Positions 2,466 to 63,448 of a stretch of DNA of 64,000 nucleotides are shown piece after piece. Position 1 is the stretch's first letter. Each line of letters starts with the position of its first letter. Made by a program: the position numbers and the translations under genes. A model generated the notes under the pieces. That model was not told where the DNA came from. It did not search any database and worked only from the letters and a program-made list of their open reading frames with translations. The DNA is taken from the IMG/VR virus record IMGVR_UViG_3300027996_002186, positions 372,001-436,000 of that record; one strand, 5' to 3'.

Positions 2466-4091
2466 TTATTTAACTACTAAGTGTGGTGCTGACCAAATAG
2501 ATTCTGATTTAGCAAAATCAACTATTTTTGTTATATAATCATCTCTTATTTCTTGTGGTAGATTATATAACCAATCTATGAATACTATTGATTGTAGTCT
2601 TGAATTCTCCGCATTTGACTTTTCTCCATCACCAGATAAATCTTGATTGAATATACCGCTGAGGTAATCATTTTCAACCACAAACATCTCACCAACTAAA
2701 TATTCTCTTATTTCAGATTTATCCTTTTTCTTTCTTATAAACTCCTTGATTTGATACAAATTATCTGGCATTAAATGATTTATCATTGATCCAGCTTTAC
2801 CACTAACATACCCACCCTTACTCTTAAGCTCAAGTGATATGTTTGATGTTTGATTACTATCAAATGTTCTACAATCTATACCTGAACCATCTTTCCAATT
2901 ATTAGCAACATCGGCCTCGTTCTCAAATTTCCAGGAAAAGTCTATATTAGCTGTTTTTCTAGAAGGCTTTACCACTTTATCCAGGTTATCAGCTTTTAAC
3001 TTATTATCTATATCTTTATTACCAGAATTAACTATCATTAATTTTGGAGTATTTATCGTTTGCTTAAGTGATACTCCAACTAATCCTTTTCGATGAATAA
3101 CAGACTCACCTAAGAAATCATTAAGATCATCAATATTATCCATATCATAATATGAATTATAATTAGATAAAGATTCATTTCCCTTAAAAACTATCCAGAA
3201 ATCGCTTGGGTTCCATTTAGCCATATTTGAAAGCTCTGGTATATCATAAAAATTATAATCACCTAATAACTCACCAGCCTCGAGTATTATTCCTTTTTTA
3301 TTTTGTATTTCTTCTTTAAATATAAAATGAGCAAATTTATTAATAAGTAGATCTTTACTATTCTTCACTATATAAGAAATATTACTTATATCATCCTCAC
3401 TAAGGTATCCATCTTTAATTCTATTACCGCTTTTATCATATCCCAGTAGAAAATCACATTGATTTTCCATACCTTCCATGATTTTTTTACCTGTTGTAAA
3501 TATATCATATGAGTTATTAATATCATCCATAGATTTATTATTTGATATACTAGCAAATCTTATATCCTTTCTAGTCTCATACCTCATAAGTATTTTACCA
3601 TGATGTGTTTGTATGTTTAACTTAACACCAGCGTTTAACCAAGCTCTAATAGCTAATGTTATTAGAAAGGCAGTTTCTCTAAAATGGTTACCTCTTTTAG
3701 AAGGACCAACACGATCATATTGTCTAACCATATTGGATATTGATCCTCTCTTGGCTACAGCCCAGTCAATGTTAATATCATCAGAATCGGTATGATATAT
3801 CATTAAATCATCATTTGATTCAACTTCTAATTTTAATTTTAAGTCTGAGAAATTTATTTCAGTAACAGTTGAATTTCTTATCCAAATAACCTTTTCATCA
3901 TCACCTGGGATATCCCCCTTTGATAAATCTAATTTTATATCAAAATTATTAATGTTAGATGTTTCTATCTCATTTACTAATTTTTTCATCGCCACTGATT
4001 TCCCCTTTCTAGAAAGGCTATAAGGCATTTTTTTATCACCACTAAGAGTAGCTTCTTTAATAAACCTATTATACCTTAGTATTTTTTTCAT
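2466..4091 (-). CDS. Large hypothetical protein, possible PD-(D/E)xK-like nuclease, N-terminal capsid-targeting-like motif
   Basis: Start moved to ATG 4091 (MKKILRYNRFIKEA), 5 nt after TAATATATA; KWNPSDFW...LVGVSLK motif. Confidence 0.6.
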   Translation of the reverse strand: MKKILRYNRFIKEATLSGDKKMPYSLSRKGKSVAMKKLVNEIETSNINNFDIKLDLSKGDIPGDDEKVIWIRNSTVTEINFSDLKLKLEVESNDDLMIYHTDSDDINIDWAVAKRGSISNMVRQYDRVGPSKRGNHFRETAFLITLAIRAWLNAGVKLNIQTHHGKILMRYETRKDIRFASISNNKSMDDINNSYDIFTTGKKIMEGMENQCDFLLGYDKSGNRIKDGYLSEDDISNISYIVKNSKDLLINKFAHFIFKEEIQNKKGIILEAGELLGDYNFYDIPELSNMAKWNPSDFWIVFKGNESLSNYNSYYDMDNIDDLNDFLGESVIHRKGLVGVSLKQTINTPKLMIVNSGNKDIDNKLKADNLDKVVKPSRKTANIDFSWKFENEADVANNWKDGSGIDCRTFDSNQTSNISLELKSKGGYVSGKAGSMINHLMPDNLYQIKEFIRKKKDKSEIREYLVGEMFVVENDYLSGIFNQDLSGDGEKSNAENSRLQSIVFIDWLYNLPQEIRDDYITKIVDFAKSESIWSAPHLVVK

Positions 4092-4173
4092 AACATTATA
4101 TATTAATATCATGAAATCAGAATCATGTTATCTCACTCATTATTCAAAATGTATATTTCGAATATGTAATAAT

Positions 4174-5199
4174 TTAATTATTGTTATAAACCCTATTATA
4201 CTCTGTTCTATATTTATATGAAATCACTTGTATGGAATATCCTGTATTTGGTTCATATTTCAATTCTTTACCCAAAATATTATAGTACTTTATGGATATT
4301 GGACTTTCAGAATCTTTGTTTATTGATATTATATTAAAGTATTCGAAATCTCCATTATAATCTATTTGTTTTAATCGGTAATAAACTAAGTCTGTGGTTG
4401 TTTTATTATCATAATAATATGATAGTGTTTCACTAGAGTTACCGGCACCAGCAACCTGACCAACAAAATTCCATTGTTCTCCGTTAATAGATGAATAGAT
4501 TTCAAATCTATCATTGTTAGATTCAGATGCAGTTAACCATTTTAACTCATCAAGGCCGTTATTCTCGTTGTATTCACCAGTAAAAGATAATAATTCAATT
4601 GGTAGAGCAATAGAGCAAGTTGTTTCATAAACAAAGATATCATCAAAGTAATATTCTTCGGTATCAGCTTGATTACCTAATAATACTCTAATTTTCAATA
4701 TAGATCCTGTTCCAATATCTATACAATCTATTTGTGAATAACCATTAACAGCCCCACAGACTGCCATAAAGTTTATCCAAACACCGCCATCAATTTGATA
4801 TTCGGCATTTAGTAGGTCCTCACCAGAACCACAACTATTACACTCCATGTTACCCTCAGCTCTCATTGAGATGGATATAGACATAGTAGTATATCCTATT
4901 ATATTAATATCTTCTGATATCCAAATATTATCAGATTCACCTTGGCTATTAACACAACAAGTTAAACCCTCAATATCCTCACAACAAAATTCTTTATCAC
5001 CAAAGGTTGTTCTTGTTCCCCAATAATTATTACCAACTGTACCGGGAGCTCCATCAGCATCACAATTATTAGCAGATGTAGTCCACTTGGTAGTATTTTG
5101 TGTACCGTCTGTATATGATTCGAAATCTTCTGACCAAATAACTGTTTGTGAATTAAGAATAAATGGTAGTAATAAAACTAAAAATGTAAATATCTTCAT
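4174..5199 (-). CDS. Secreted Bacteroidota-type protein (signal peptide, Cys-rich beta domain, LPIEL Ig-like domain, degenerate T9SS-like tail)
   Basis: MKIFTFLVLLLPFILNSQ signal peptide; LPIELLSFTG..LKWLTASESNNDRFEI..GAGNS..YYRLKQIDYNG; tail YYNILGKEL. Confidence 0.8.
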   Translation of the reverse strand: MKIFTFLVLLLPFILNSQTVIWSEDFESYTDGTQNTTKWTTSANNCDADGAPGTVGNNYWGTRTTFGDKEFCCEDIEGLTCCVNSQGESDNIWISEDINIIGYTTMSISISMRAEGNMECNSCGSGEDLLNAEYQIDGGVWINFMAVCGAVNGYSQIDCIDIGTGSILKIRVLLGNQADTEEYYFDDIFVYETTCSIALPIELLSFTGEYNENNGLDELKWLTASESNNDRFEIYSSINGEQWNFVGQVAGAGNSSETLSYYYDNKTTTDLVYYRLKQIDYNGDFEYFNIISINKDSESPISIKYYNILGKELKYEPNTGYSIQVISYKYRTEYNRVYNNN

Positions 5200-5233
5200 A
5201 TAGAATATATATTAAATATACTTAATTGTTTGA

Positions 5234-7166: not shown

Positions 7167-7580
7167 TTACTCACCTTTGATGAAGCTTATTTGATACGAA
7201 GCTTTCCTGTATGTGAATTCAAATTTAATAGGATCCGGATTGCTATTATCGAAACAATTATTCACTTTGAATCCTCTTGAATTCATATATCCGGTTATAT
7301 CTTCTATATTAGAATCGACAAGATATTTTTCGTGGAAATCACCATCTTCAGTTTTATTAATATTTATGTATAACTCTGGTGTTTTTCTTGCTTTAGCCAT
7401 TGTCATTGGTGAGAAACTAGCAATTGTTTCATATCCAATATCATCTAGTTCTGATAATTTATCTTCAATGAATTCAAAACAATCATTCATATCAACAATT
7501 ACATCACCATATACATTATAAAGATTTTTAGGAACTTTATTAAATGATTCAAATATTTTATATGTGTTTATGTGTTTCAT
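7167..7580 (-). CDS. Hypothetical protein, CTS-like N-terminus, dispersed paralog family
   Basis: MKHINTYKIFESF; DKLSELDDIGY. Confidence 0.75.
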   Translation of the reverse strand: MKHINTYKIFESFNKVPKNLYNVYGDVIVDMNDCFEFIEDKLSELDDIGYETIASFSPMTMAKARKTPELYININKTEDGDFHEKYLVDSNIEDITGYMNSRGFKVNNCFDNSNPDPIKFEFTYRKASYQISFIKGE

Positions 7581-7590: not shown

Positions 7591-8256
7591 TTAGATATTC
7601 ATCAATGGAATTTTAGGCTTGATTTCAAATCTTTCATTTAAATACATTTTCAATTCATTCTCGATATAATGTTCTGGAACCTCCATAGATGGATCCATAT
7701 GTTCCATTCTATCTGATAATTCTATTGAGAACTCGTGGAGTACAGTAGGTTTTATAGCTTGTACTAATCTATCAGAAACAACAAAAGCTCTAGTAAATCT
7801 ATCCTTTGGTGATATTTCACCTTCTGCCAATTTCATTGAACTCTTTATAACCTTTTTCAAAAAGGAATTGTAATTGTTACCTGGATCTTCTAAGATTGGT
7901 TTCATAATTTTATTAAATGCTCTAGTTGATCCGAATAAAAACCCTGCGATTGCTATTATTGGGAAGAAAGGAGCTAAAGCCATGGGTGTAATTCTATGCA
8001 CCATTTTAATAACACCAACTTTCATAGCTGATCTTTTCTTGGCTACTTGAGCATCTTTGAATAATGCATTCAACATACCAAATGTGAAAGATGTTCCATT
8101 CTCATTTAAATACTGACCAAGATTACCTCTATGAGCGTGATATAAATGTGTTTTTATATCTTTCTTAGTAACACCTAACCTTTTTAATTCGGCCTTAATG
8201 TTCTTATCATATTTTTCTTGAATTAAAAATTCATCATATTTCTTAATACTCTTCAT
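7591..8256 (-). CDS. Hypothetical protein with hydrophobic segment, CTS-like N-terminus
   Basis: Track start 8400 overlaps the gp52-like gene; the likely start is ATG 8256 (MKSIKKYDEFLIQE). Hydrophobic stretch ALAPFFPIIAIAGFLFG. Confidence 0.7.
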   Translation of the reverse strand: MKSIKKYDEFLIQEKYDKNIKAELKRLGVTKKDIKTHLYHAHRGNLGQYLNENGTSFTFGMLNALFKDAQVAKKRSAMKVGVIKMVHRITPMALAPFFPIIAIAGFLFGSTRAFNKIMKPILEDPGNNYNSFLKKVIKSSMKLAEGEISPKDRFTRAFVVSDRLVQAIKPTVLHEFSIELSDRMEHMDPSMEVPEHYIENELKMYLNERFEIKPKIPLMNI

Positions 8257-10388: not shown

Positions 10389-10734
10389 TATAGAAATAAA
10401 TATTGAACCATGGGTAATAATTTCACAGGTAGGTGAGTATGAACACCACACACTAATAATGATGTTGACACTCATTGTTGAGTTTAATGGTAATTATTTT
10501 TATATCAAAGATGATGATCAAAAACTCAAAGATGTTTCTAATATGCCAAATTATATAAAGGAAGATTGGTTAAACTACAATAAGAAAGAATTGGGTATAT
10601 CTGTTATTAATAAACAGATAAGGAACCTAGAAATGATTTTAGAGAAAAAAAGTCCTTATGATCCAAAAGATGAAGAATCTCTCACACAACTAATATCAAT
10701 ACGTAGAGATTTAATTATCAACGGTATCATTTAA
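10381..10734 (+). CDS. Hypothetical protein, C-terminal tag variant
   Basis: Overlaps upstream stop; ends IRRDLIINGII. Confidence 0.7.
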   Translation: MDNIEINIEPWVIISQVGEYEHHTLIMMLTLIVEFNGNYFYIKDDDQKLKDVSNMPNYIKEDWLNYNKKELGISVINKQIRNLEMILEKKSPYDPKDEESLTQLISIRRDLIINGII

Positions 10735-11178
10735 TTCAAAAGCTATATCAATAGAAGAAATCCAACTAAGTGCTGCTTCTGACATAGATTCAATATATTT
10801 CTTGAAGTTATCAACATTACTTACCCACACAACATTATTTTTCACTAGATAAATATTAGATAACTTACAATTATATCTACTCTCAAAGTGATCAATTGTT
10901 AATTTTAATTCTTCATAAAAATCATTACTAAAATTAAATTCCGAGTTTTTATGTGCTTCTCTAATCATAATTAGATCTATCATCAGACCGCGTTTTATAT
11001 TAGTCATATCTAATTCATTGTGGTCCTCAATAATGTCTTTGCCGCCCATTGATGCTATATTTACAAGATTAACATCGTGAAATCTCATACCAAAATCACA
11101 GACATTACCAAATATATCTTTAATATCATGAAAATTCATATCATCAGTAAAGTCCTCGAATAATTTAATATACTTCAT
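10711..11178 (-). CDS. Hypothetical protein, CTS-like N-terminus, dispersed paralog family
   Basis: MKYIKLFEDF; DIKDIFGNVCDFG; TAATATATA 4 nt upstream. Confidence 0.8.
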   Translation of the reverse strand: MKYIKLFEDFTDDMNFHDIKDIFGNVCDFGMRFHDVNLVNIASMGGKDIIEDHNELDMTNIKRGLMIDLIMIREAHKNSEFNFSNDFYEELKLTIDHFESRYNCKLSNIYLVKNNVVWVSNVDNFKKYIESMSEAALSWISSIDIAFELNDTVDN

Positions 11179-12805: not shown

Positions 12806-13210
12806 ATGAATCATTTAAAAAAATATGATGAATTTGTAAACGAGAATTTTTCAGATAGTATTAAGAAAGCTTATAATAGTACTAAACAGAAAGTAAAAGA
12901 CTTTAGTATTAAAGGATTATATAGAGATAGTGTTGATTTTACTAAGAGTTTTTGGGAAGCTACTAAACGTGAAGGTAAAGAAACTAGTCAAGCAATTGGT
13001 ATTTTAAGAAAAATGATTAAAGGACAAGAGGTTAGTGACCAAGAGAAATCATTCTTTAAAAAACAAGCTGGTGATGTTGCTAAGATATTCCCACTTATTG
13101 CAATACAAGGAATACCAGGTGGGTCGGTTGCTATAACTCCATTATTGAAAATTATCGGTAATAAATATAACTTTAATCCATTCCCATCCAAGACTGAGTT
13201 AGGTGAGTAA
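12806..13210 (+). CDS. LETM1-like domain protein with CTS-like N-terminus
   Basis: MNHLKKYDEFVNE; EGKET..EK..FKKQAGDVAK..PLIAIQGIPGG..PFPS. Confidence 0.55.
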   Translation: MNHLKKYDEFVNENFSDSIKKAYNSTKQKVKDFSIKGLYRDSVDFTKSFWEATKREGKETSQAIGILRKMIKGQEVSDQEKSFFKKQAGDVAKIFPLIAIQGIPGGSVAITPLLKIIGNKYNFNPFPSKTELGE

Positions 13211-17617: not shown

Positions 17618-17850
17618 AAGCTTATTGTAAAAGGACATTTATAAACAATGATGAAATTAGGTGGGGTAGAGATAAGTATTATCAAACAATAACACCAGAA
17701 GATTATGAGGTGGAAAATGGTATTCATATTTATATATTGATGGAAAACCATATTCAAAAGTTTTATCCCTTATCGAAAAAGGATTTCGATAAGTATTTTA
17801 TCGGAATTGATGAAATTAGAAGTAGTAAAATTGAGAAAATATTAAAATGA
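17614..17850 (+). CDS. Hypothetical protein with RxxKI tag
   Basis: TTG start overlapping upstream stop; ends EIRSSKIEKILK. Confidence 0.7.
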   Translation: MKAYCKRTFINNDEIRWGRDKYYQTITPEDYEVENGIHIYILMENHIQKFYPLSKKDFDKYFIGIDEIRSSKIEKILK

Positions 17851-22840: not shown

Positions 22841-23095
22841 TTAAAACTCAATCTTCTTGATATTACGTAAGTCTATCCCATATTCATTATTATCATATTC
22901 TATGGTGACTAATCCATCCTCATCTACACTAACAGCTCTCAAAGGATCCTCTTCTTCTATACCAGGTAAATCCTTAATAGCTGTTGCATAAACAACACCT
23001 TCTCCTTTAATACATTTTATGATATCATCTTGTGTTATCAAAGATCCTTCTTCGTTATTTTGCTTAAAATCCTCAAATAATTTAATCCATTTCAT
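22841..23095 (-). CDS. Small hypothetical protein, CTS-like N-terminus
   Basis: MKWIKLFEDF. Confidence 0.75.
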   Translation of the reverse strand: MKWIKLFEDFKQNNEEGSLITQDDIIKCIKGEGVVYATAIKDLPGIEEEDPLRAVSVDEDGLVTIEYDNNEYGIDLRNIKKIEF

Positions 23096-23235: not shown

Positions 23236-24063
23236 ATGGAATGGATTAAAAGATTTGAAGAATTAAACTCAAATACATATAGATCAGCTGGAGATCATCT
23301 TATAAATATCAATAAGATATCAAGAGGTCAAAAACTAATTGATTATGCTGATGAAAAAGATTTCGGATTCTATAATGTTTGGTGGGGAAACACAAATAGT
23401 GCCATTAGTAAAAAACCTTTAGTGTTTACTAATCCAAAGTCTGATTTTATTTACAACGTTTTTAAGATAACTCGAGGAGGACCGAAAGCTAATGACATTA
23501 AACATAAACTTTCCAATAAGGGTCCAGAAGAATTAGTTAAAGATTGGTATGATGGAGTTTCTTCTTTATCATTCACCATAAATTTCACATTCAAAACCGC
23601 AGGTGAATCTTTAAAAGTACATGATAGATTAAAAAGATGGAAAGTTCCATTATTTTCTATAAACTTTCAAATAGCTGAGTGGGTAGAAAAAGAAGATTTT
23701 GAAGGTGTAGATGACGATCCGATAGTAAAAAATGCTCTTGATTTATATCAACACATGGATGGTTATCATTATCCACAGATTTCTATACAAAGACCTTTAG
23801 ATGATCACTACTTTGGTATATTTAGTGATAGAAAATCAGCCAATAAATTTAAAAGAGATGTACTTGGTCCTGCTATAGAAGAACATCATGATAAAATATT
23901 TGAGATATTCTCTATCATAGGAGCTTCTGCAAAAGATTTTGAAAAAGCAATTAAAGCATTTAAAAATATCAGAACCAACTATCTATATGATGAATCAATA
24001 GGAAGATCAAACCCAGAGCAATTATGGTATAATAATTATGGTTGGGATAATGAGATGCATTGA
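23236..24063 (+). CDS. Tandem paralog 1 of 4, CTS-like N-terminus
   Basis: MEWIKRFEELNSNTYRSAG; FSDRKSANKF; IRTNYLY. Confidence 0.8.
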   Translation: MEWIKRFEELNSNTYRSAGDHLININKISRGQKLIDYADEKDFGFYNVWWGNTNSAISKKPLVFTNPKSDFIYNVFKITRGGPKANDIKHKLSNKGPEELVKDWYDGVSSLSFTINFTFKTAGESLKVHDRLKRWKVPLFSINFQIAEWVEKEDFEGVDDDPIVKNALDLYQHMDGYHYPQISIQRPLDDHYFGIFSDRKSANKFKRDVLGPAIEEHHDKIFEIFSIIGASAKDFEKAIKAFKNIRTNYLYDESIGRSNPEQLWYNNYGWDNEMH

Positions 24064-24090: not shown

Positions 24091-24834
24091 ATGAAATACT
24101 TAAAACGATTTAACGAAGAGTTAAAACCTCAAACATATAGAAGAGCGGCTCATAAACTTGATAAAATGGGTCATACTGGTAGAGCTAAGGAATTAAAGGA
24201 TTGGTCTTATAAAATAGAAGATGATGTCAATATCACTAAATGGAAAAATAACTTAGAAGAATATAGTAAATTTGGAACATATAAATTGAATATTAAAACA
24301 GAGAAAGGTGACATAAGTGGTGATTTTTTCTTAGATATTATTTTTGATGGTGATAGTTTTGTGGATTCATTATATGACAATGAAGAAACCTCTAATAAAT
24401 CTGGTGGTATATGGTTCTTTGTTGGTATTATTCCAACAACAGAAGAACTTTTAAAAGAATGTAAAGATAAATTTCCGGATAATGATATGGGTAATGGTTT
24501 TTTCTGGGGATTGTCTGTTGGTTTAGATTATGAAATAGAAGATGATAAAGTTAATTTCAAGAAATTTGAAATTCATAATTATGACAAACACATATCAGGT
24601 GATATTTCTTTAGGTGATAGAGGAACCGCAAATAGATTTAGAAATATCTTAAAGAAGATGTTTACTGATCCATCATTCAATTATCCAAGTGGTAGAAATG
24701 ATGTTGAATATGTGTATCAAGCATTTGAACAAGTTATTTTAAGCGAAGCTGGATTCTCATCAGATTATGGATTTAAATTAGAAGATGTTGCTGAGTTTAT
24801 AAATACTATATCAATAAATACACTATATAAATAA
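24091..24834 (+). CDS. Tandem paralog 2 of 4
   Basis: MKYLKRFNEELKPQTYRRAAHKLDKMGH; DRGTANRF; ISINTLY. Confidence 0.8.
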   Translation: MKYLKRFNEELKPQTYRRAAHKLDKMGHTGRAKELKDWSYKIEDDVNITKWKNNLEEYSKFGTYKLNIKTEKGDISGDFFLDIIFDGDSFVDSLYDNEETSNKSGGIWFFVGIIPTTEELLKECKDKFPDNDMGNGFFWGLSVGLDYEIEDDKVNFKKFEIHNYDKHISGDISLGDRGTANRFRNILKKMFTDPSFNYPSGRNDVEYVYQAFEQVILSEAGFSSDYGFKLEDVAEFINTISINTLYK

Positions 24835-25736
24835 TGAAATACTTAAAACGATTTAACGAAGAATTAAACTCTTATACTTATACTAAAGCGGCGAATGCTC
24901 TTAAAAAAATGGGTCATAATAGAAGATCTAGTGTTTTAACAAAATGGGGAGAAGAAACCAAGAAAAGAGAAAAAATAAAAGCTGCGAATGAATTAAGAGC
25001 TAAGCTTGAAAAGACACCACCATTTAGTATGAAAATTTTCAGAGATAAGTGGAATAGTGCCACGAAAAGTAGAGATTTCTCACAAGGTCCTTATCTTGAA
25101 GGTAATTTTTACTTAGGAGCTTATTTTGAAGAAGACTGGGCTTATGATGGTGAATATTTTATGGAATATGAACAGGATAATAAATCAACGATGCAATTTT
25201 CATTTGGTTTATCACTTTTTCCAGCTGATGAAGAAACACAATTAAAGTTTGATAAAGAAGAATGGGAAAATGAATGGAATAATCAAATCTGGCCAGTTAT
25301 TTTCACAATTAGATTAAATAATGATAAAACTACTTTAGATCAAGAAAAATCAGCATTCTTTTGGGAAGAAAGAGAGGATGGTAATTTTTTATTTTCAAGT
25401 AGGTCTGAAGCTATGAAATTCAAAAGATACTTAATATACTCATTGAGTGGTGTTGATAATGATTTTAGTAAAGCATTTAGTGGTGTTAAATCAATAATTA
25501 GTGATATGATTAAACGTTATAATGATAAAGATGGTTATTACTTGACTAGGGTTCCAAAAAACGTTGTTGGGAACGGTATTGTTTTCGATAGAGATGATTA
25601 TGAAATAATAAAAAAAGGTAATTTTGAATATTATTGGCCATTTGGTGATAAAGAATGTAATCTAAAGGAAAGTGATTATAATTATTTTGAGAAAGCGATT
25701 AAACGTATGGGTCTAAATAATTTATATAGAGATTAA
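24834..25736 (+). CDS. Tandem paralog 3 of 4
   Basis: MKYLKRFNEELNSYTYTKAANALKKMGH; FSSRSEAMKF; MGLNNLYRD. Confidence 0.8.
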   Translation: MKYLKRFNEELNSYTYTKAANALKKMGHNRRSSVLTKWGEETKKREKIKAANELRAKLEKTPPFSMKIFRDKWNSATKSRDFSQGPYLEGNFYLGAYFEEDWAYDGEYFMEYEQDNKSTMQFSFGLSLFPADEETQLKFDKEEWENEWNNQIWPVIFTIRLNNDKTTLDQEKSAFFWEEREDGNFLFSSRSEAMKFKRYLIYSLSGVDNDFSKAFSGVKSIISDMIKRYNDKDGYYLTRVPKNVVGNGIVFDRDDYEIIKKGNFEYYWPFGDKECNLKESDYNYFEKAIKRMGLNNLYRD

Positions 25737-26524
25737 TGAGATATTTAAGAAAATATAATGAAGAGTTAGATGGTAAGACTTACTTAGATGCCGCTCGTAA
25801 GCTAGGTAAACTAGGTCATAAAAATAGAGTATCTAAATTAAAAGACTGGGCCAAAAAAAGTGCATACAATTCTCTTAGGAAAGGAATTGAAAGTTTAGGA
25901 ACCTTTGAGTTAACTATTGATAGCAATTATGGCTCAACATATACTGGTGAGTTTTATATAGATTTACAATTCGATGAGGATCAATTCAATGATAGATATT
26001 ACAACTGGATTTGTGGTGATGTTATTGATCTTTGGCTTTATTTTAATATTAGTATTTTACCAGTAGATGATTCTTTCAAAAAACATGATTCTGCTAGTTC
26101 TGGAGAGATTAATGAAAAACTTAATGGATCCTATGGAATAGGTGAGATATCAATACATTTGGGTAATATTCCTGAGGATTTGGATGTGCATGATATGGAA
26201 AAAGTTTATCAAATATACCAAAAGGATAAGTACTCATCTAAAATACCACATGTGGTTAACCCCTTAGGTAAGGTTTCTATGGATTATTTTGATGTTCCTT
26301 TCTACTTTACTGATAGAAAATCAGCATCTAGGTTTAGAAAGGGTTTAATAGATATATTTAAGGGTAATATCGTTTATAAAGAAACTAGTAAACAACCTGG
26401 CGGATTAAAGGAAGAAATTATTGACTTTCTAATATCAGATAATAACTATCTTGATTTTGATGAATTCCAAATTTGGCTAGAAAGGTTAGGAAGAATAAAT
26501 ATTAATAGATTATATAAAGATTAA
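25736..26524 (+). CDS. Tandem paralog 4 of 4
   Basis: MRYLRKYNEELDGKTYLDAARKLGKLGH; FTDRKSASRF; ININRLYKD. Confidence 0.8.
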   Translation: MRYLRKYNEELDGKTYLDAARKLGKLGHKNRVSKLKDWAKKSAYNSLRKGIESLGTFELTIDSNYGSTYTGEFYIDLQFDEDQFNDRYYNWICGDVIDLWLYFNISILPVDDSFKKHDSASSGEINEKLNGSYGIGEISIHLGNIPEDLDVHDMEKVYQIYQKDKYSSKIPHVVNPLGKVSMDYFDVPFYFTDRKSASRFRKGLIDIFKGNIVYKETSKQPGGLKEEIIDFLISDNNYLDFDEFQIWLERLGRININRLYKD

Positions 26525-39649: not shown

Positions 39650-40378
39650 TTATTCTGGATTTGGATCTGGGTTTATCCAGAACTTAACACTTAACCAATC
39701 AGTTCCGGTTAATTCATGTTCGTAATAATCAAATCCAAGTACTTCTATCATTCTATCTAATTTATCTTCGATATCATCTGGTATACTACCATCATATTCA
39801 AATGATTCAGCACCAACGTGACACATATTATCATCAACTTCATACTCAATATCTTCAGCATTTAATCCAAAGTTAGCGAACTTAGCCTTTATCTCTTCCA
39901 CACTTGGTAATTCATCATCGGTTACTTCATCTGGTTTATTAAATGAATATTTTATATTAGTAAATCTAAAATTTGTATTATCTTTGTTTGATGATCTAGG
40001 TGTTGATACATTAAAATTATCAAATATCCACCCAATATCAGCTAGTCTATCAATGGCGGTTGTCATTTCACTTACTATATCACCAAACTCTTCATTACCC
40101 ATATGTTTACTAGCAGAATTTGAATTTATAACTATATTTAATTTATTTTTAATTTTATTACCAGCTTTGAATGTTGGTTTGAAGTCAGATACATCACCAT
40201 TATCAATATAATCACTTATTGATATTTTACCATTAGGTGATTCAAACCAAATAAGATATCCCTTATCAGCAATATCTTGGACTATATCAACCAAGTCAGG
40301 TAATAATTGATTTATATTTTCTTCCTCGAATTTGCTCTCATTTAAGGAAAATTTGTTATATTTGTTCAAATACTTCAT
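39650..40378 (-). CDS. Hypothetical protein, CTS-like N-terminus, dispersed paralog family
   Basis: MKYLNKYNKFSLNES; DLVDIVQDIADKGY; AIDRLADIGW. Confidence 0.75.
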   Translation of the reverse strand: MKYLNKYNKFSLNESKFEEENINQLLPDLVDIVQDIADKGYLIWFESPNGKISISDYIDNGDVSDFKPTFKAGNKIKNKLNIVINSNSASKHMGNEEFGDIVSEMTTAIDRLADIGWIFDNFNVSTPRSSNKDNTNFRFTNIKYSFNKPDEVTDDELPSVEEIKAKFANFGLNAEDIEYEVDDNMCHVGAESFEYDGSIPDDIEDKLDRMIEVLGFDYYEHELTGTDWLSVKFWINPDPNPE

Positions 40379-45516: not shown

Positions 45517-45942
45517 TCACCAAAATTGCCGTCTGTTCTGACTATCTAATGTGGTATCAACATCTGAAATATATTGCATATGGCACACAAAGTATAACAT
45601 TGGTCCTAATCCGAAATTGAATTCAAATTCAAACCCAATTTTATATCCTATGGATTCTAACCTTTGTTTAATTTCTTCGATTGTTTTTAGAAAATTCATT
45701 TGATTTGTTATCTCACTTATATTTGTTATTCCATAAGCACTACCAACATCAATCGGATCAAGTATCGATTCTTCTAAATTTTTTCTAAATTCAAAGAAAT
45801 AAGATCCATGTGAAGCAGTATCAAAAAATTTTATATCGAATCCATCATCAATAATTTCAATGAATAAATCATTAACATCATCATTACTTAGATAATTGTG
45901 GCTCGACTCAAATACTTTGAATTTCTTAACCTTCTTCCTCAC
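45517..45942 (-). CDS. Hypothetical protein, CTS-like N-terminus, dispersed paralog family
   Basis: GTG start, MRKKVKKFKVFES; DVNDLFIEIIDDGF; KQRLESIGY. Confidence 0.7.
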   Translation of the reverse strand: MRKKVKKFKVFESSHNYLSNDDVNDLFIEIIDDGFDIKFFDTASHGSYFFEFRKNLEESILDPIDVGSAYGITNISEITNQMNFLKTIEEIKQRLESIGYKIGFEFEFNFGLGPMLYFVCHMQYISDVDTTLDSQNRRQFW

Positions 45943-47038
45943 CTGTTATTATCTTTTTGATTTCTTCTACTTGGTCTTTTTTAGAATCATCTTGTAACAT
46001 ATCAGCTAAATCAGCGACAGTTTTCATTTTATCAGCATCATCCTTTATATTACCCAAAGATTCTGCTGCTTTTTTAGCTTCTTCACTTTGGTCAACCTCA
46101 ATTTTCATTAAGATATCTTCCTTTGTCTTTTTAAAATCAGCATCTTCGAAAGATATATCATCACCAGAAACATCTTTAACCTTTTTAACACCAATCATTT
46201 CCTTATCTTGTAAGTCTTGCATTGGTCCTTCATCAGTTTTTTTCTTATCATCATCACTTAACTTTTCCCACTCATCCGCACTGAATTTATCTCTTTTATA
46301 AACAATTGTATCTCCAGATTTAAGTTCACCTGGTCCTTCTGATGATGCTTCTATACCTTTAGAATCCAAGTATTCTTCAACTTTTGAAGAATCAACTTCC
46401 TCTACGTATTTTAATAATGTCGGTGTTAGTGTTTTATTAACCCATCCAAGAGCTGCTTCTTTTCTTTTCACACCATCTTCTCCCGCGCTTTGTAAAACCT
46501 TCTTAAAATCTGGTAAATGTGTTGTGTCAGCCATATCCATCTTCTTAGAAGCCGGGTCAATCTTAGCTTCTCCAATTTTCAAGTCTGGTCCCCCAGCATA
46601 TTTAAATTGTTTTATTGCTCTGTTTCTAGCTGTTTCAAAATAATATTTAATAGTTTCTAATGGTGCTAAATTATCACCATAAACCTTTTTAAGACTTTCG
46701 TATAATGGTTCAAGTCCTTGTGTACCAAGAGCTCCTGTTTCAGGATCTAGAATATTATCAACCAAGGTTAAGCAATCTTCATTGTTTGCTTCTGGTTTCT
46801 TTTCAAACTCTTCAATAACAGATTTGAATAAATAAGTACCATCTGATGGGTTAAATATCTTAGTTTCTATCCAAGTGTCTATATCTTCTGTTTTTGGGTT
46901 ATCTCCTCCCATTTTTTCTAGATCTTGTACAGCCTTACCCCACATTTTCTTAAAAAAATCAATTAAACCACCAAACAATTCCTCATTAACGGGAGCATTT
47001 CTAAACGATTCAAATGTTTTTATGTAATTCTTTTTCAT
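45926..47038 (-). CDS. Putative internal virion protein, paralog of 47050-48114
   Basis: MKKNYIKTFESF..VNEE|LFGGLIDFFKKMWGKA; shared domain IVYKRDKF..EWEKLSDDDK. Confidence 0.75.
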   Translation of the reverse strand: MKKNYIKTFESFRNAPVNEELFGGLIDFFKKMWGKAVQDLEKMGGDNPKTEDIDTWIETKIFNPSDGTYLFKSVIEEFEKKPEANNEDCLTLVDNILDPETGALGTQGLEPLYESLKKVYGDNLAPLETIKYYFETARNRAIKQFKYAGGPDLKIGEAKIDPASKKMDMADTTHLPDFKKVLQSAGEDGVKRKEAALGWVNKTLTPTLLKYVEEVDSSKVEEYLDSKGIEASSEGPGELKSGDTIVYKRDKFSADEWEKLSDDDKKKTDEGPMQDLQDKEMIGVKKVKDVSGDDISFEDADFKKTKEDILMKIEVDQSEEAKKAAESLGNIKDDADKMKTVADLADMLQDDSKKDQVEEIKKIITGEEEG

Positions 47039-47049: not shown

Positions 47050-48114
47050 TTATTTTTTAGAATCTTCCGATGCTCTATCAGCTTTTGCTTTTACACCAGC
47101 AGCTTTAGCGTCTTCTTGCTCCTTATCCATTAACTTATTAGCCTTATCCTCAGTTGTTTCTTCTGTGGATTCATCAGTTTCCTCTTTAGGTTCTTCCTTA
47201 ACCTTAACTTTAAGTAAAATATCAGTAAGAGGTTTTGTTATATCTTTATCATCTTTATTCTTGAATGTGAAATTATCACCATCAATTTTAGTAATTGATT
47301 TACTACCAACTTGAACATCATCCCACTTATCCTCATCTGTTTTTTCTTCATCTGAAAGTTTATTCCATTCCTCTTCTTTGAAATCCTTTCTTTTATAAAT
47401 AACAACATCATCTTCTTTATACTCAACTGGTTTTCCAGTTTTTTCAAATTTAACCCAGTCTTCTCTTTGTTTCTCTCCAAGTGTTTTAGCTTCTATTTGT
47501 TTAGCTGCGGCTAGTTTCTTAGATTCTGGATCCTCTGATTTTTCTAAAGATGATATTTCAGCATTCAATAAATCCAATGTGAATTGATCCTTTTTAATAT
47601 TAATTATTATTTGTAATTGTGGGTTCTTAGAACCACCACCCTGTTTTACTAATACAGCATCCATCTCTTTAATAGCCATACCTTTCATTTGTACAATTAT
47701 CTTTTTTAAGATATCTTGCTTTTGTTTTAATATCTTAGGATCTACAGCTGGTTTCTTTTCGGCCTCTCCTGGTTTTTTATCAGTAGTTTCCTCTGCTCCT
47801 TCTTCTGCTACTGCTCCTTCTTCTCCTTCTTCTGCTACTGCTTCTTCTGCTTCGAATACTTTAGACTCTTTGACAGAAACTTTACCTAATTCTAAGTTTA
47901 AACCAGTTTGTTTAACAATAGCATCATTTATCAACTTCAGATATTTTTTATAAATAACCTCAATCTCATTACCACCCTGCGTCTTTCTTATATTTTCTCC
48001 AGCTTTTTTAAACATTTTTCCGAAGAATTTACCAATAGCACCAAGAAATTCTTCATTGACTGGTTTATTATTATTATTATTCTTGAAAGATTCAAAGGTT
48101 CTTACATATTTCAT
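47050..48114 (-). CDS. Putative internal virion protein, paralog of 45926-47038
   Basis: MKYVRTFESF..VNEE|FLGAIGKFFGKMFKKA; VIYKRKDF..EWNKLSDEEK. Confidence 0.75.
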   Translation of the reverse strand: MKYVRTFESFKNNNNNKPVNEEFLGAIGKFFGKMFKKAGENIRKTQGGNEIEVIYKKYLKLINDAIVKQTGLNLELGKVSVKESKVFEAEEAVAEEGEEGAVAEEGAEETTDKKPGEAEKKPAVDPKILKQKQDILKKIIVQMKGMAIKEMDAVLVKQGGGSKNPQLQIIINIKKDQFTLDLLNAEISSLEKSEDPESKKLAAAKQIEAKTLGEKQREDWVKFEKTGKPVEYKEDDVVIYKRKDFKEEEWNKLSDEEKTDEDKWDDVQVGSKSITKIDGDNFTFKNKDDKDITKPLTDILLKVKVKEEPKEETDESTEETTEDKANKLMDKEQEDAKAAGVKAKADRASEDSKK

Positions 48115-55998: not shown

Positions 55999-56277
55999 TC
56001 ACATTTGGTCAAGATTATCATCGGTATATTCACCCGGATAGTCGTCTTCGTCCTCACCAAGTATAGTATTGATTACTTCTCTAGTATATTTATCTGTCAG
56101 AAATGAGACAAAATTATCTAAGGTTGTATGACAAGATGAGTGTACATCATTTTCTTTATGAAAATCATCTAAGTCTGTGAAAAAATCTAAGGTTTTCCAT
56201 GGTCCTTCTTCCTCTTCTTGCATCTCTAAAATTCGATTGACTTTAGTATTTTCATTAAACCTATTTATATGTTTCAT
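55999..56277 (-). CDS. Small acidic protein, CTS-like N-terminus
   Basis: MKHINRFNEN. Confidence 0.7.
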   Translation of the reverse strand: MKHINRFNENTKVNRILEMQEEEEGPWKTLDFFTDLDDFHKENDVHSSCHTTLDNFVSFLTDKYTREVINTILGEDEDDYPGEYTDDNLDQM

Positions 56278-60624: not shown

Positions 60625-60626
60625 TT

Positions 60627-61055
60627 ATGAAACACATTAAAAAGTTTAATGAAGAATTAGTACCAAGATTTCCCACTCATAATAAGGGGGAGGTTATTGT
60701 TTATGCTAAGGATTTAGATTATAGAAATGTTCAAGTATTTGCTAAGAAGCTTGGTTATGAAGTAGTTGGTGAGGTTAGAGATGATGGTTATTTAGTGAAG
60801 ACACCAGTTGGTCAAGAAGAACAAGCCGGTGCTGATTTTGTTGATAACTATCCAGAATTTTTCTATAACCACGAAAGAGAAGATATCAAAGATACTATGG
60901 CTTATGAAGAGTTAGATGATATCAAAAATGATGTTGAAAATTTAAGAGATTCTCTTGGTAGTCTAAATAAGTTTGGAAAAAGTATGTTACCTGATGGTTG
61001 GAATGAGGACATCGACAAAATTATTAATAGATTACAAAATGCCAAACACGAATAA
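60627..61055 (+). CDS. Hypothetical protein, CTS-like N-terminus
   Basis: MKHIKKFNEE. Confidence 0.75.
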   Translation: MKHIKKFNEELVPRFPTHNKGEVIVYAKDLDYRNVQVFAKKLGYEVVGEVRDDGYLVKTPVGQEEQAGADFVDNYPEFFYNHEREDIKDTMAYEELDDIKNDVENLRDSLGSLNKFGKSMLPDGWNEDIDKIINRLQNAKHE

Positions 61056-61939: not shown

Positions 61940-62749
61940 TTATCTTTTATCAATTTGTTCATATCTCCAATAGAATCCACGAGATTTCCTATTAATATTC
62001 TTACAACAAAATGAAATATTAGAAGAGTTACTACCTACATGATTTGCAGCTTCTTTGATAGATTTAAATTCCCCAACTAGTTGATTATCATTATCATATT
62101 GATATACTTTCTTACCTATTTTTTCTTTCCTAGTCATATCCACTTTCACCAATTCACTACCGTCATCATATTTCCAAATGAACTTTCTGTGGTGCTTTCT
62201 TATACCGGTTAAACAAGCTGATATTTTACCTGTGCTAAAAAAACCATCACTTTCAACAACAGCGTCTTTAATACACTTATACTTCTTTATTATGTTATAG
62301 TTTATATCATATTGTATTATTGATTTATAACTATTGATATTAGGAATCCCAATTAATTTATTTTTAATTTTCTGCTTGGTTTCTTCACTACAAGGAACTC
62401 CTTTGTTATGTGGTGTATTTCCTTTCTTAAAGGATCCTTTATTACCAAAGGTAGATCCATCACCACCTGATGTATAATTAACTAATGAAAATCCCCATGT
62501 TTTGAATAATGATATATAGAACATTTCCCAATATTGCCATTCAGATACCGGAACCTCATCTATAATAATTAACTCAGGTCTAAATCCATCCTTTCTAACG
62601 TTGTTAATCCAATTTCTTTTATGTGTATTCTTATCCCTAGCAGAATTAAAGTGATTTGTGTATCTATCTTTCGGATTGTTGGCTTTCCCAATATACCTAA
62701 TTTGGTTATTTCTGGGATCAGATAGAGCATATATAAAAACATTTTTCAT
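61940..62749 (-). mobile_element. Free-standing GIY-YIG homing endonuclease with NUMOD3/NUMOD1-type DNA-binding repeats
   Basis: FIYAL..RYIGKA, WEMFYI, NYTSGGDG, SEETKQKI, two QYD..SIKEAA..FxW HTH-type modules. Confidence 0.9.
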
Positions 62750-62801
62750 TTCTTATATATAAAAACACCCAGTACCTCTTTTACCTAAAATTATAACATT
62801 T

Positions 62802-63185
62802 TTAATTTGGTATGAATTGAAGGCTTATTGATTGTAGGATCCATTCTGGGAATTCTTCAATCCTCTTGATATTTATAAATCTAGCACTGCCATTAGATAA
62901 TACAATGTGTATATTTTTAATCTTACAATCCTCTGATATTATAATATCGTTAATTCGTTTAAGATATTCATTGACATCATTCAAACTAAATAAATACTTA
63001 TCTGGATAAACTCCTATTTGGTTGGTTGATTTATCAATATCTATTGTTATTCTTTCTAATGAATCGGATCTCTTTGTAACACTAGTTTTGAAATTTATAT
63101 CATCTAATTCAAGTAATACATCTCTTATATTATTCATCAGAGAATCTTCGTCATTAAATGACTCAAACATCTTTAGATAATTCAT
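62802..63185 (-). CDS. Hypothetical protein, CTS-like N-terminus, dispersed paralog family
   Basis: MNYLKMFESFN; NIRDVLLELDDINF. Confidence 0.75.
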   Translation of the reverse strand: MNYLKMFESFNDEDSLMNNIRDVLLELDDINFKTSVTKRSDSLERITIDIDKSTNQIGVYPDKYLFSLNDVNEYLKRINDIIISEDCKIKNIHIVLSNGSARFINIKRIEEFPEWILQSISLQFIPN

Positions 63186-63448
63186 TATAATGGTTTATAA
63201 TTTGGGATAGCTCCTTTGTAATTCTTATTACCACTCTTTAGTTGTTCTCTTTCTGCTTCAGATGCAGCTCCATATTCTGGATCTTTCTTTTCTTTATCTT
63301 TACAATCCATACAGATTATATCTTCATTGAACATACTCATTGTGGTCATATTATTAGTTGATTCACCACATCTATCACAATTATCTCTTCTCATGTCGAA
63401 GGAACCATGTCGTGCTGAATAATCTTCAAATGTTTTTAAGTTTTTCAT
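63185..63448 (-). CDS. Small CxxC..CxxC zinc-binding protein, CTS-like N-terminus
   Basis: MKNLKTFEDY; CDRC..MSMFNEDIICMDC. Confidence 0.75.
   Translation of the reverse strand: MKNLKTFEDYSARHGSFDMRRDNCDRCGESTNNMTTMSMFNEDIICMDCKDKEKKDPEYGAASEAEREQLKSGNKNYKGAIPNYKPL

Follow-up and report, generated by a model that had tools for sequence, protein, structure and literature searches.

The DNA analysed here, termed the window, is a stretch of 64,000 nucleotides (positions 372,001 to 436,000 of IMG/VR record IMGVR_UViG_3300027996_002186). It comes from a huge "Mahaphage" of Bacteroidetes that is 70-89% identical in housekeeping proteins to LR745206.1 (635 kb). An earlier note listed 23 gene starts in the window that share an N-terminal motif resembling the T4 capsid-targeting sequence. 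We found that all 23 coordinates hold an in-frame start followed by the peptide the note gave, and its observation is therefore confirmed. Sixteen of 94 called genes fit a strict pattern, ^M[KRENQ][YHWFNKT][ILVM][KRNDQ].[FY], while seven carry looser or register-shifted versions, two of which are uncertain members.

Table. Genes in the window whose products begin with the shared N-terminal peptide (tag), by start class.
Coordinates	Strand	Length (aa)	N-terminus	Class	Remarks
7167..7580	-	137	MKHINTYKIFESF	strict	ORFan; "YKIFES" variant; no Pfam match
10711..11178	-	155	MKYIKLFEDF	strict	ORFan; TTAATATATA lies 4 nt before the ATG; the LR745206 ortholog keeps 8 of 10 tag residues while the rest is 34% identical
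12806..13210	+	134	MNHLKKYDEFVNEN	strict	ORFan; contains Y-D-E-F-V-N-E-N, close to the scaffold repeat and to the T4 tag pattern
22841..23095	-	84	MKWIKLFEDF	strict	small protein; AF2 residues 1-17 have pLDDT below 50; one homolog has a 13-aa insertion right after the tag
23236..24063	+	275	MEWIKRFEEL	strict	first gene of a row of four tagged genes (the next three are detectably paralogous)
24091..24834	+	247	MKYLKRFNEEL	strict	family conserved across the clade; AF2 pLDDT 91.4, only residues 1-8 below 50; no fold match
24834..25736	+	300	MKYLKRFNEEL	strict	paralog; the ortholog keeps 10 of 10 tag residues against 33% for the rest
25736..26524	+	262	MRYLRKYNEEL	strict	paralog
38305..38913	-	202	MKHIRLFEKFYE	strict	ORFan; absent from the syntenic place in LR745206
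38962..39648	+	228	MEHLDKYKSFSINE	strict	class III nucleotidyl cyclase; the tag is followed by a charged linker, then the Guanylate_cyc domain from residue 55 (PF00211, 5e-19)
39650..40378	-	242	MKYLNKYNKFSLNE	strict	ORFan
47050..48114	-	354	MKYVRTFESF	strict	paralog of 45926-47038
55999..56277	-	92	MKHINRFNEN	strict	small acidic protein
60627..61055	+	142	MKHIKKFNEEL	strict
62802..63185	-	127	MNYLKMFESF	strict	also carries the second downstream motif (..IRDVLLELDD..)
63185..63448	-	87	MKNLKTFEDY	strict	small protein
2466..4091	-	541	MKKILRYNRFIKEA	loose	Y-x-x-F-I-x-E, T4-like; start at 4091 preferred over 4112 because TTAATATATA lies 5 nt upstream of it; no Pfam match
7591..8256	-	221	MKSIKKYDEFLIQE	loose	lies between the two topoisomerase II genes; the ortholog starts MNTIKKYDEFLIQE
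26540..27742	+	400	MIIKKYKKFLES	loose	CCA-adding/poly(A) polymerase family enzyme; the PolyA_pol head domain starts at residue 41 (PF01743, 2e-30); the ortholog starts MILKKYKMFLES
37308..37940	-	210	MIQGWSKFNEN	loose	TTAATATATA lies 5 nt before the ATG; the ortholog keeps 9 of 10 tag residues against 44% for the rest
45926..47038	-	370	MKKNYIKTFESF	register-shifted
45517..45942	-	141	(M)RKKVKKFKVFES	uncertain	GTG start; no ortholog found in LR745206
61039..61407	+		MPNTNKYIKSFILFES	uncertain	motif begins at residue 6; the LR745206 ortholog starts MNKIKSFKLFES

Two of the looser members depend on alternative starts, and both starts are supported. A promoter-like element sits inside the longer ORF at 4091 (tag MKKILRYNRFIKE), and the longer ORF at 8256 would overlap the opposing gene. 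Moreover, the LR745206 ortholog of 8256 carries the same N-terminus.

The motif is far beyond chance. The earlier note had named lack of enrichment over AT-rich N-termini as grounds for rejecting it, but the 16 strict matches compare with 0.1 +/- 0.3 expected (maximum 2 in 500) after permuting residues 2-16 within each protein, and with 0 of 253 internal Met contexts. Without any predefined pattern, enrichment is seen position by position: basic residues at 2 (p=8e-9), H/Y/W at 3 (4e-5), aliphatic residues at 4 (3e-5), basic residues at 5 (1e-7), and aromatic residues at 7 (4.5e-5). An AT-rich control, the cultured Tenacibaculum jumbo phage PTm1, shows no tag in 55 genes. In LR745206, 83 genes carry the strict pattern against 1.2 expected, and about 95 of 923 genes are tagged when alternative starts are counted. 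The share of tagged genes is 17-24% in the window, where the note had inferred roughly a quarter, but about 10-13% genome-wide in this relative.

The note described the tagged proteins as otherwise unrelated, and this is largely right. After the first 16 residues were masked, only 24091/24834/25736 and 47038/48114 were detectably paralogous. In LR745206 the 95 tagged proteins fall into 84 BLAST clusters. Only four have Pfam domains (cyclase, Hc1-like, M15 peptidase, and DUF6576), and these are unrelated to one another. In a related phage the tag sits on arrays of LRR proteins. Of the enzymes named in the note, Pfam confirmed the CCA/poly(A) polymerase-family enzyme and the class III cyclase, whereas a possible nuclease was not verified among the tagged proteins.

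The note also stated that most tagged genes or their operons sit behind TAATATATA, which is only partly right. Exact AATATATA lies within 45 nt upstream of 9 of 23 tagged genes and TATATA of 13 of 23, against 11 and 21 of 70 untagged genes, respectively. However, the TATATATA element also precedes topoisomerase II, UvsX, terminase, portal, sheath, protease, and capsid genes. The element therefore carries no timing or class information, and the promoter argument fails.

What is under selection in the tag? Synonymous codon use inside tags equals that of gene bodies, and positions 3 and 4 vary at all codon positions. The constraint is therefore on amino acids rather than RNA. The tag is the best-conserved part of fast-evolving proteins, with 8-10 of 10 residues kept in orthologs whose remainder is 31-45% identical. 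AlphaFold (AF2) models of two tagged families leave the tag, which holds the most conserved columns, unstructured at pLDDT below 50 and outside confident domains. Residues 11-20 are polar and acidic, and the junction tolerates a 13-aa insertion. Glu is preferred over Asp 98:21 at positions 8-11, against a background of 0.92, and the residue after the first Glu is mostly S, N, A, or G. A second tag class, Mxx(K)[YWF]xx[FY]IxE[SN], occurs 21 times against 1.3 expected. Variants in distant Mahaphages, such as MKKYNEYLLEE, have the same pattern as the T4 tag ([FY]-x-x-[FY]-[IL]-x-E).

The tag is restricted to phages of this clade. The DNA pattern gave 117 stretches in IMG/VR, where 22% of neighboring genes are tagged. 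In 596 Gb of cellular genomes it gave only about six isolated hits, plus contigs that are mis-binned Mahaphage DNA. A search of the literature found no paper containing the tag strings.

The closest complete relatives encode a T4-type head module, although the protease, scaffold, and capsid genes were seen in these relatives and not in the window. The module includes a gp20-like portal (phrog_213, 2e-59), an S77-like head maturation protease (phrog_207, 4e-30; GEFDHP against T4 GELNHP), and a Gp23-family capsid protein (PF07068, 2e-26). The protease is fused to a scaffold whose 14-residue repeats (YSEY[IL]AE) are conserved in four genomes and match the pattern of the T4 tag YQEFIAE. This resemblance was noticed post hoc, and a PSSM built from the repeats gave only a weak enrichment at N-termini. 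The capsid propeptide carries a conserved ..[IML]-x-E↓N site that is also present in PTm1 and LR756500.

The closest known system is the T4 capsid-targeting sequence of internal proteins IPI, IPII, and IPIII (Mullaney and Black 1996, as reviewed in PMC9026906 and PMC3012670). The T4 record gives MKTYQEFIAE for ipII and ipIII. In T4, targeting depends on residues 4 and 7 and processing on residues 8 and 10 (PMC9026906). T4-family proteases cut after Glu, and Asp at position 10 blocks T4 processing. In the tags described here, position 4 is aliphatic, position 7 is aromatic, and these are the fixed hydrophobic positions, with a Glu following at 8-11. Both peptides are about 10 residues at the extreme N-terminus, start with M-K, end in a Glu followed by a small residue, are attached to diverse, fast-evolving accessory proteins, and occur in a phage with a gp20/gp21/gp23-type head module. 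A sub-class here (Y-x-x-F-I-x-E) has the same pattern as T4 YQEFIAE. However, T4 has three such genes, whereas here there are about 16-23 in 64 kb and about 95-115 per 635-kb genome. The consensus also differs (MK[YH][LI]Kx[FY] with basic residues), the putative cargo is mostly acidic and includes enzymes, and the commonest endings are F-N-E or F-E rather than I/L-x-E.

Other systems share some of these features. [quoted passage not shown] Those propeptides are mostly longer than 100 residues, have no shared short consensus, and are cut at S/A/G-x-E, and those phages are not close relatives of this clade. Encapsulin cargo-loading peptides are a functional analogy, as short, disordered, portable peptides that load unrelated enzymes into an HK97-fold shell. 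They are usually C-terminal, bind the shell protein directly, are not cleaved, have unrelated sequences, and occur in cellular systems. Finally, PTm1 encodes a prohead protease-scaffold fusion (ORF-300, "prohead core scaffolding protein and protease") with the same gene order, protease-scaffold then capsid protein, and an N-terminal S77-like protease followed by a repetitive, acidic scaffold part. The PTm1 repeats differ (..WI[KR]..FTKELSEGIEKWI..).

We consider three alternatives to prohead targeting. The tag may be a docking or localization peptide for another destination, such as an amphipathic basic-aromatic helix that binds the host inner membrane, or a handle for a phage chaperone, a protease adaptor, or a replication or assembly compartment. 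The tag is disordered in isolation with helical propensity, and its basic residues at 2, 5, and 6 and hydrophobic residues at 3, 4, and 7 form a format also used by membrane-targeting helices. Moreover, every portability, conservation, and clade-restriction result fits any partner-binding linear motif equally well. However, about 7-10 residues is short for membrane anchoring, no alternative partner was identified, and the closest sequence analog by position is the T4 tag. The preference for Glu over Asp, followed by a small residue, is unexplained by membrane binding but expected for a Glu-specific maturation protease. This alternative is possible but doubtful.

Two further readings are unlikely, the second slightly more so. 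The tag might favor translation start or early elongation on leaderless or very short-leader mRNAs, or protect the protein from degradation. Many tagged genes have the AATATATA element only 4-5 nt before the ATG, so the transcripts may be leaderless, and K, Y, I, L, F, and N are the amino acids of AT-rich codons. Yet permuting the same residues destroys the pattern, codon use in tags is that of gene bodies, and the consensus includes His, Trp, and Glu, whose codons contain G or C. Many tagged genes are internal to operons with overlapping stop and start codons and no nearby promoter, and untagged genes with the same 4-5 nt spacing are common. The shared N-terminus might instead be the last recognizable remnant of one huge, rapidly diverging paralog family, with no address function. 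Local paralog groups and tandem arrays exist, and about 18% of tagged proteins in LR745206 share a second motif, D[IL]xD[IL]Fx[ED]LxD, some 10-20 residues later. However, the tag is attached to proteins of clearly different folds and origins, including a class III cyclase, a PolyA_pol-family enzyme, an M15 peptidase, LRR proteins, and the predicted alpha/beta fold of the 24091 family. It lies outside the folded domain and is under stronger constraint than the rest of each protein, which a decaying remnant would not be.

We therefore favor, at about even odds, a T4-like prohead-targeting propeptide that is removed after Glu and is greatly expanded in number. In this view, the roughly 10-residue basic and aromatic tag (M-K-[Y/H]-[L/I]-K-x-[F/Y]), free of the folded domain, would dock the newly made protein onto the acidic, aromatic scaffold core of the assembling prohead. 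In the relatives that core is the C-terminal part of the protease-scaffold fusion, which carries 11-13 copies of NIxYSEY[IL]AEN[LV]DK. The gp21/S77-type prohead protease would then cut after the conserved Glu at position 8-11, typically ..F-N-E↓S, ..I-F-E↓S, or ..F-E↓S, releasing the cargo inside the head, and the cargo would be expelled into the host with the DNA. Our analysis establishes that the tag exists, is selected at the protein level, is separable from the fold, is portable across unrelated proteins, is restricted to this phage clade, and co-occurs with a T4-type head module. Scaffold binding, cleavage, packaging, and injection are inferred, without direct evidence. Several points count against this reading. 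We found no cultured relative with a virion proteome that carries the tag. PTm1 lacks it, and phage G is unrelated. The cargo is predominantly acidic (median pI 4.8), whereas the T4 internal proteins are described as basic in the reviews consulted, and the commonest tag endings do not fit the strict T4 L/I-x-E rule. Some tagged enzymes are not obvious injected proteins, such as the CCA/poly(A) polymerase-family enzyme and a small M15 peptidase that could be the endolysin. About 100 different cargo species per virion would be unprecedented. The interpretation offered in the earlier note, that a portable tag addresses head-packaged, injected cargo, is thus only partly supported. If the tag acts as the T4 sequence does, these phages may carry about a hundred different proteins into the host cell.

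The 64-kb window has 29% G+C, no Shine-Dalgarno-like leaders, and no tRNA genes. Its topoisomerase II large subunit is 85.5% identical to that of LR745206.1 (634,780 bp) and 75.7% identical to that of LR756502.1 (642 kb). The window is syntenic with LR745206 from about 484 kb onward, with housekeeping proteins 70-89% identical and many ORFans 35-65% identical. Al-Shayeb et al. 2020 (PMC7162821) describe four largest complete genomes of 634, 636, 642, and 735 kb and place their largest genomes in the Mahaphage clade, with predicted Bacteroidetes hosts. A weak match to a T9SS-type C-terminal sorting domain on one window protein fits a Bacteroidetes host. In addition, the IMG/VR contig IMGVR_UViG_3300025770_000004 (312.7 kb) holds proteins with the same N-termini and lengths as those of the window (near-perfect phmmer match, E = 1e-169).

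The earlier note's observation of a shared N-terminal motif holds, as all 23 of the N-termini it listed are present. A strict pattern, ^M[KRENQ][YHWFNKT][ILVM][KRNDQ].[FY], fits 16 of 94 called genes at residue 1, whereas permuting residues 2-16 within each protein gives 0.1 +/- 0.3 (maximum 2 in 500) and 0 of 253 internal Met contexts match. Without any pattern, positions 2 and 5 are enriched for basic residues, position 3 for H/Y/W, position 4 for aliphatic residues (p=3e-5), and position 7 for aromatic residues (p=4.5e-5), with p between 1e-9 and 5e-5 overall. Seven further genes carry looser or shifted versions, two of which are uncertain (45942, a GTG start, and 61039, offset by five residues). 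With the first 16 residues masked, only 24091/24834/25736 and 47038/48114 are detectably related. Pfam confirms a PolyA_pol-family (CCA/poly(A)) enzyme at 26540 and a class III cyclase at 38962, while the other tagged proteins have no Pfam family. None of the recognizable housekeeping enzymes in the window is tagged, namely the topoisomerase halves, two DNA methylases, DHFR, PRPP synthetase, an epimerase, a glycosyltransferase, a PAS histidine kinase, and a GIY-YIG endonuclease. The two topoisomerase II genes are separated by two tagged ORFs. The phage also encodes two-component signaling parts. The histidine kinase lies next to a gene whose N-terminus looks like a response-regulator receiver, and a second receiver-like gene lies elsewhere in the window, both assigned by eye from the N-termini. 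Several untagged small proteins end in a similar C-terminal peptide, roughly K[IL]xx[IL][LG][NDI] (..RIDDILN, ..KLEKLGI, ..NLSDLGV, ..ISQILDN, ..VLESLGI), an unquantified resemblance that is possibly the C-terminal tag mentioned in the earlier note.

To extend the analysis beyond the window, we read the whole of LR745206.1 and called 923 ORFs. Of these, 83 start with the strict pattern, against 1.2 expected by permutation, and 12 more have the pattern at an in-frame Met within the first about 50 residues, giving about 95 tagged genes. Only 4 of 2296 deeper internal Met contexts match. The consensus is MK[YH][LI]Kx[FY] followed by NE[SE], K[IL]FE[SA], or ES. After masking 12 residues, the 95 tagged proteins form 84 BLAST clusters. 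Their median length is 159 aa, and they are acidic (median pI 4.8 against 5.7, p=9e-11). Only four have Pfam domains, all different: Guanylate_cyc, Hc1, Peptidase_M15_4, and DUF6576. The 164-aa M15-family peptidase (motif HAMGYAID) carries a strict tag and could be a virion-borne wall hydrolase or simply the endolysin. The 71-aa Hc1-like histone-type protein matches the strict pattern, but its N-terminus may be part of its own fold. About 18% of the tagged proteins share a second motif, D[IL]xD[IL]Fx[ED]LxD, some 10-20 residues downstream, which marks one paralog subfamily. Moreover, a second tag class, Mxx(K)[YWF]xx[FY]IxE[SN], occurs 21 times against 1.3 expected, for example as MIKKYLDFIKES, MRLKKYNQFIKES, and MISKYNQFINEE. 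One tagged gene in the window (38305-38913) has no counterpart at the syntenic place in LR745206, and the best match of another (12806-13210) lies elsewhere in that genome. Tagged genes therefore turn over faster than their neighbors.

The tag is found across related phages but is rare outside of them. More distant Mahaphages carry strict tags and shorter variants such as MKKYNEYLLEE and MIKMFEQFKES; these are LR756504, LR756501 (capsid protein about 52% identical), and LR756500 (35%). A DNA pattern for MKYLKxFNE found 117 stretches in IMG/VR, many on 150-640 kb contigs, and in those 952 kb, 289 of 1290 genes are tagged, 171 of them besides the seeded hits. In 596 Gb of bacterial and archaeal genomes the same pattern found only 21 stretches. 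Fifteen of these lie on contigs of two MAGs that are syntenic with LR745206 at 43-73% protein identity, so they are mis-binned megaphage DNA; the remaining six are isolated hits. Taken separately, the contigs of the GTDB species-representative MAG 'Candidatus Muiribacterium halophilum bin 137' are syntenic with LR745206 at 45-73% protein identity, and 60 of 133 genes in these stretches are tagged. The contig of a Cellvibrionaceae MAG shares three LR745206 proteins at 32-45% identity and carries 7 tagged genes in 8 kb. Six of the Muiribacterium-bin stretches contain long tandem arrays of tagged leucine-rich-repeat proteins (Pfam LRR_4) whose stop and start codons overlap and whose lengths step by 21 aa (203, 224, 245, ... 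371), which is one repeat unit. This is a hypervariable binder family with a homolog in LR745206. In contrast, the closest cultured phages by capsid protein, PTm1/PTm5 (29% identical), lack the tag in the region examined. The AT-rich Tenacibaculum jumbo phage PTm1 has none in 55 genes, and the only cultivated megaphage, phage G, is unrelated. The tag is therefore a property of one phage clade, and not of AT-rich genomes or of the hosts. Chance and AT-rich composition are ruled out by the permutation, internal-Met, and PTm1 controls.

Coordinates of the features discussed in the window, in LR745206.1, and in related stretches
Sequence	Coordinates	Strand	Feature
Window	4174-5199		Protein with a true signal peptide, MKIFTFLVLLLPFIL
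Window	5234-7078	-	Topoisomerase II large subunit
Window	7167-7580	-	Tagged ORF between the topoisomerase II genes
Window	7591-8256	-	Tagged ORF between the topoisomerase II genes
Window	8294-9637		Second topoisomerase II gene
Window	12806-13210		Tagged gene; best LR745206 match at 74.7 kb
Window	24091-26524		Three tandem tagged paralogs (24091/24834/25736)
Window	29277-30248		Weak T9SS-type C-terminal sorting domain
Window	30711-31085		Second receiver-like gene
Window	38305-38913		Tagged gene without a counterpart at the syntenic place (L001, a stretch of LR745206, about 46536-46558)
Window	54241-55925		Two-component signaling parts: receiver-like gene (54241-54672) and PAS histidine kinase (54669-55925)
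Window	2053-2436, 17847-18602, 18657-18974, 36600-37013, 37077-37289, 40448-41314, 51461-51754		Untagged small proteins with a similar C-terminal peptide
Window	e.g., starts at 11178, 12806, 37940, 38913, 38962, 40378, 4091		Promoter-like element ending 4-5 nt before the ATG
LR745206.1	19905-20588		Homolog of the tagged leucine-rich-repeat proteins
LR745206.1	193127-194860		gp20-like portal
LR745206.1	198546-200669 (L016:8546-10669)	+	Prohead protease fused to a scaffold-like part, 707 aa
L141 (related genome)	25272-27371	+	Protease-scaffold fusion
L140 (related genome)	25342-27636	-	Protease-scaffold fusion
L139 (related genome)	23913-26336	+	Protease-scaffold fusion
LR745206.1	200752-202434		Gp23-family major capsid protein
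LR745206.1	373473-373967		Tagged M15-family peptidase, 164 aa
LR745206.1	567352-567567		Hc1-like protein, 71 aa
JALOAD01 contigs (Muiribacterium bin)	L143, L145-L147, L149, L151-L153, L155, L157-L161		Mis-binned Mahaphage DNA
CAZCJR010000003.1 (Cellvibrionaceae MAG)	L156		Mahaphage DNA, 7 tagged genes in 8 kb
JALOAD01 contigs	L143:481-7248, L147, L152, L153, L155, L160		Tandem arrays of tagged leucine-rich-repeat proteins

Selection on the tag acts on the peptide rather than on RNA. Codons at tag positions vary at all three bases: position 3 uses CAC, CAT, TAT, TAC, and TGG, and position 4 uses ATA, ATT, TTA, TTG, GTA, and CTA. Moreover, synonymous usage in 95 tags does not differ from that of gene bodies, and an RNA-level constraint was rejected on these grounds. 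In orthologs between the window and LR745206, fast-evolving proteins keep 8-10 of the first 10 residues while the rest is 31-45% identical. An AlphaFold2 model of the 24091 family (22 sequences) gives pLDDT 91.4 and pTM 0.85. Its only low-confidence segment is residues 1-8, and residues 1-12 have no secondary structure, yet M1, L4, N8, E9, E10, and L11 are among the most conserved columns. This predicted fold gave no significant match in PDB or BFVD (the top hits, p32-like, have TM below 0.2), so the fold is undescribed or unrecognized. The three tandem paralogs also share a C-terminal ending, ..N.LY[KR]D. The 23095 family gives the same picture, with residues 1-17 below pLDDT 50, a loose helix at 4-13, and one homolog with a 13-residue insertion immediately after MKWIKLFEDF. 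A highly conserved, unstructured, linker-separated N-terminal peptide on unrelated domains is what a partner-binding linear signal looks like.

We compared these properties with those of known N-terminal signals. A Sec, Tat, or lipoprotein signal peptide has a hydrophobic h-region of about 10-15 residues after a basic n-region. The tag lacks one, as residues 11-20 of tagged proteins are depleted in hydrophobic residues (0.30 against 0.38) and enriched in acidic residues (0.25 against 0.14), and true signal peptides in the window look different. Nor does the tag resemble the phiKZ-type propeptides of about 100 residues or more cut at S/A/G-x-E, since the folded domains begin at about residue 13-20 in the two modeled families and many tagged proteins are only 63-150 aa long. 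The T4-type capsid-targeting sequence (CTS) is a closer match. It is a peptide of about 10-20 aa at the very N-terminus of the precursor, and the present tag likewise begins at residue 1. In T4, the targeting function maps to residues 4 and 7, as determined for IPIII, and processing to residues 8 and 10, with Asp at position 10 blocking processing but not targeting (PMC9026906). A T4-type CTS is also necessary and sufficient for incorporation into the prohead core and is removed on maturation, properties that for the present tag would be inferred by analogy only. In the present tags, residues 4 (L/I/V) and 7 (F/Y) are the fixed hydrophobic positions. Like the CTS, the tag is portable, being carried by otherwise unrelated, poorly conserved proteins, and it is more conserved than the bodies and lies outside the predicted fold. 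Glu lies at positions 8-11 in 85 of 95 tags and outnumbers Asp 98:21 at these positions against a background ratio of 0.92, and the residue after the first Glu is mostly S, N, A, or G. However, the residue at P3 is F or Y, or variable, in the main class, and the I-x-E context of the T4 rule (L/I-x-E) occurs only in the 'KIFES' tags and the class-2 tags.

A further mark of a T4-type CTS is that the same genome encodes a gp21-family prohead protease and a T4-type scaffold and capsid. The closest complete relatives encode such a T4-type head module, although these genes lie outside of the window. LR745206 encodes a gp20-like portal (phrog_213 at 2e-59; T4 gp20 at 5e-23) and a Gp23-family major capsid protein (PF07068 at 2e-26). 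Directly upstream of the capsid gene is a head maturation protease (phrog_207 at 4e-30 over residues 2-265; a weak Peptidase_S77 match) that aligns with T4 gp21 around GEFDHP/GELNHP. The C-terminal part of this protein is scaffold-like, with 11-13 tandem 14-residue repeats, NIxYSEY[IL]AEN[LV]DK, followed by a poly-acidic stretch. The repeats are conserved in LR756502, LR756504, and LR756501 and are degenerate in LR756500. The repeat core Y-S-E-Y-[IL]-A-E has the same pattern as the T4 tag Y-Q-E-F-I-A-E and as the class-2 tags. A PSSM built from the scaffold repeats and run against N-termini was overfitted and gave only 5 hits above threshold against 0 in controls, which is suggestive but weak. 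Co-variation of tag type with repeat type gave no signal, because the repeats are nearly the same in all four genomes compared. The capsid protein N-terminus carries a conserved WMSEYAE.H.[IM].E|N, and PTm1 has ...TINE|N and LR756500 ...LYE|N at the matching place. This is a plausible maturation site that obeys the T4 rule L/I-x-E (PMC9026906).

The earlier note interpreted the tagged proteins as head-packaged, injected cargo, and this interpretation is partly supported. Its promoter argument fails, and a late promoter as evidence for head proteins is rejected. Exact AATATATA lies within 40 nt upstream of 47% of tagged genes and 16% of other genes in LR745206 (odds ratio 4.8, p=3e-10), and in the window the counts are 9 of 23 against 11 of 70 (p=0.04). 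The association with tags is only about 3-5-fold. Moreover, the AATATATA/TATATATA element also precedes the genes for the capsid protein, protease, portal, sheath, tube, terminase, UvsX, and topoisomerase II. It is the phage's general promoter-like element and says nothing about timing. The element, (T)TAATATATA, ends 4-5 nt before many ATG codons in the window and genome-wide in LR745206, which suggests leaderless transcripts, and a second distance class is 20-27 nt.

We propose that the tag is a T4-type prohead-targeting propeptide, expanded from three genes in T4 to about a hundred per genome. In this view, its basic and aromatic face would dock on the acidic and aromatic scaffold repeats, and the S77-type protease would then cut after the Glu, leaving the cargo in the head for delivery with the DNA. 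Our analysis establishes only the sequence-level properties of the tag, and docking, cleavage, packaging, and injection are inferred. We consider this explanation about as likely as not. Against it stand the sheer number of cargo species, their acidity, the imperfect fit of F-N-E and x-F-E endings to the T4 rule, and a few tagged enzymes that are not obvious injected proteins. Moreover, the head genes were seen only outside of the window, no cultured relative carrying the tag was found, and there is no proteome for any tagged phage.

Could the tag serve another purpose? A docking peptide for another destination, such as the membrane, a chaperone, or a compartment, fits all of the evidence for a linear motif but does not explain the Glu-specific ending, and we regard it as possible but unlikely. 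An expression or stability element is less likely still, as it is hard to square with the permutation and codon results. It is about equally improbable that the tag is a decaying remnant of one paralog family, because this is contradicted by its presence on different folds and by its stronger conservation than the protein bodies.

No paper in the literature searched contains the tag strings, and searches on CTS in giant phages found no prior description. Reviews of T4 head assembly, giant-phage head proteolysis, and jumbo-phage genomics do not describe such a proteome-scale short tag. The targeting principle is known from T4, and its proposed extension would assign a common fate to about 10% of the genes of the largest known phages. 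If the tag is a capsid address, the YSEY[IL]AE scaffold repeats offer a concrete candidate partner through which the binding mechanism of such tags can be tested. None of the T4 reviews consulted names the core protein that the T4 tag binds. The tag is also a simple sequence marker, and it exposed megaphage contigs mis-binned into a bacterial species-representative genome.

We suggest, tentatively and with somewhat less than even confidence, that Mahaphage-type megaphages may use a short tag that pairs with the repeat units of their protease-scaffold to pre-load about a hundred different, rapidly evolving proteins into each capsid and inject them with the DNA. These would include arrays of LRR binders, a nucleotide cyclase, a tRNA-end enzyme, and many small acidic proteins. 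Part of what makes these genomes so large would then be a virion-borne effector arsenal, and the tag would be a natural, programmable protein-delivery address. If the tag is a capsid address, it marks by sequence alone the virion-delivered protein set of an uncultured clade that holds the largest known phage genomes, a set that is roughly a tenth of their genes and almost all of unknown function. It would give a first functional handle on hundreds of ORFans as candidate immediate-early or anti-defense effectors, would extend the T4 targeting principle from three proteins to a proteome-scale system, and would help explain why these capsids and genomes are so large.
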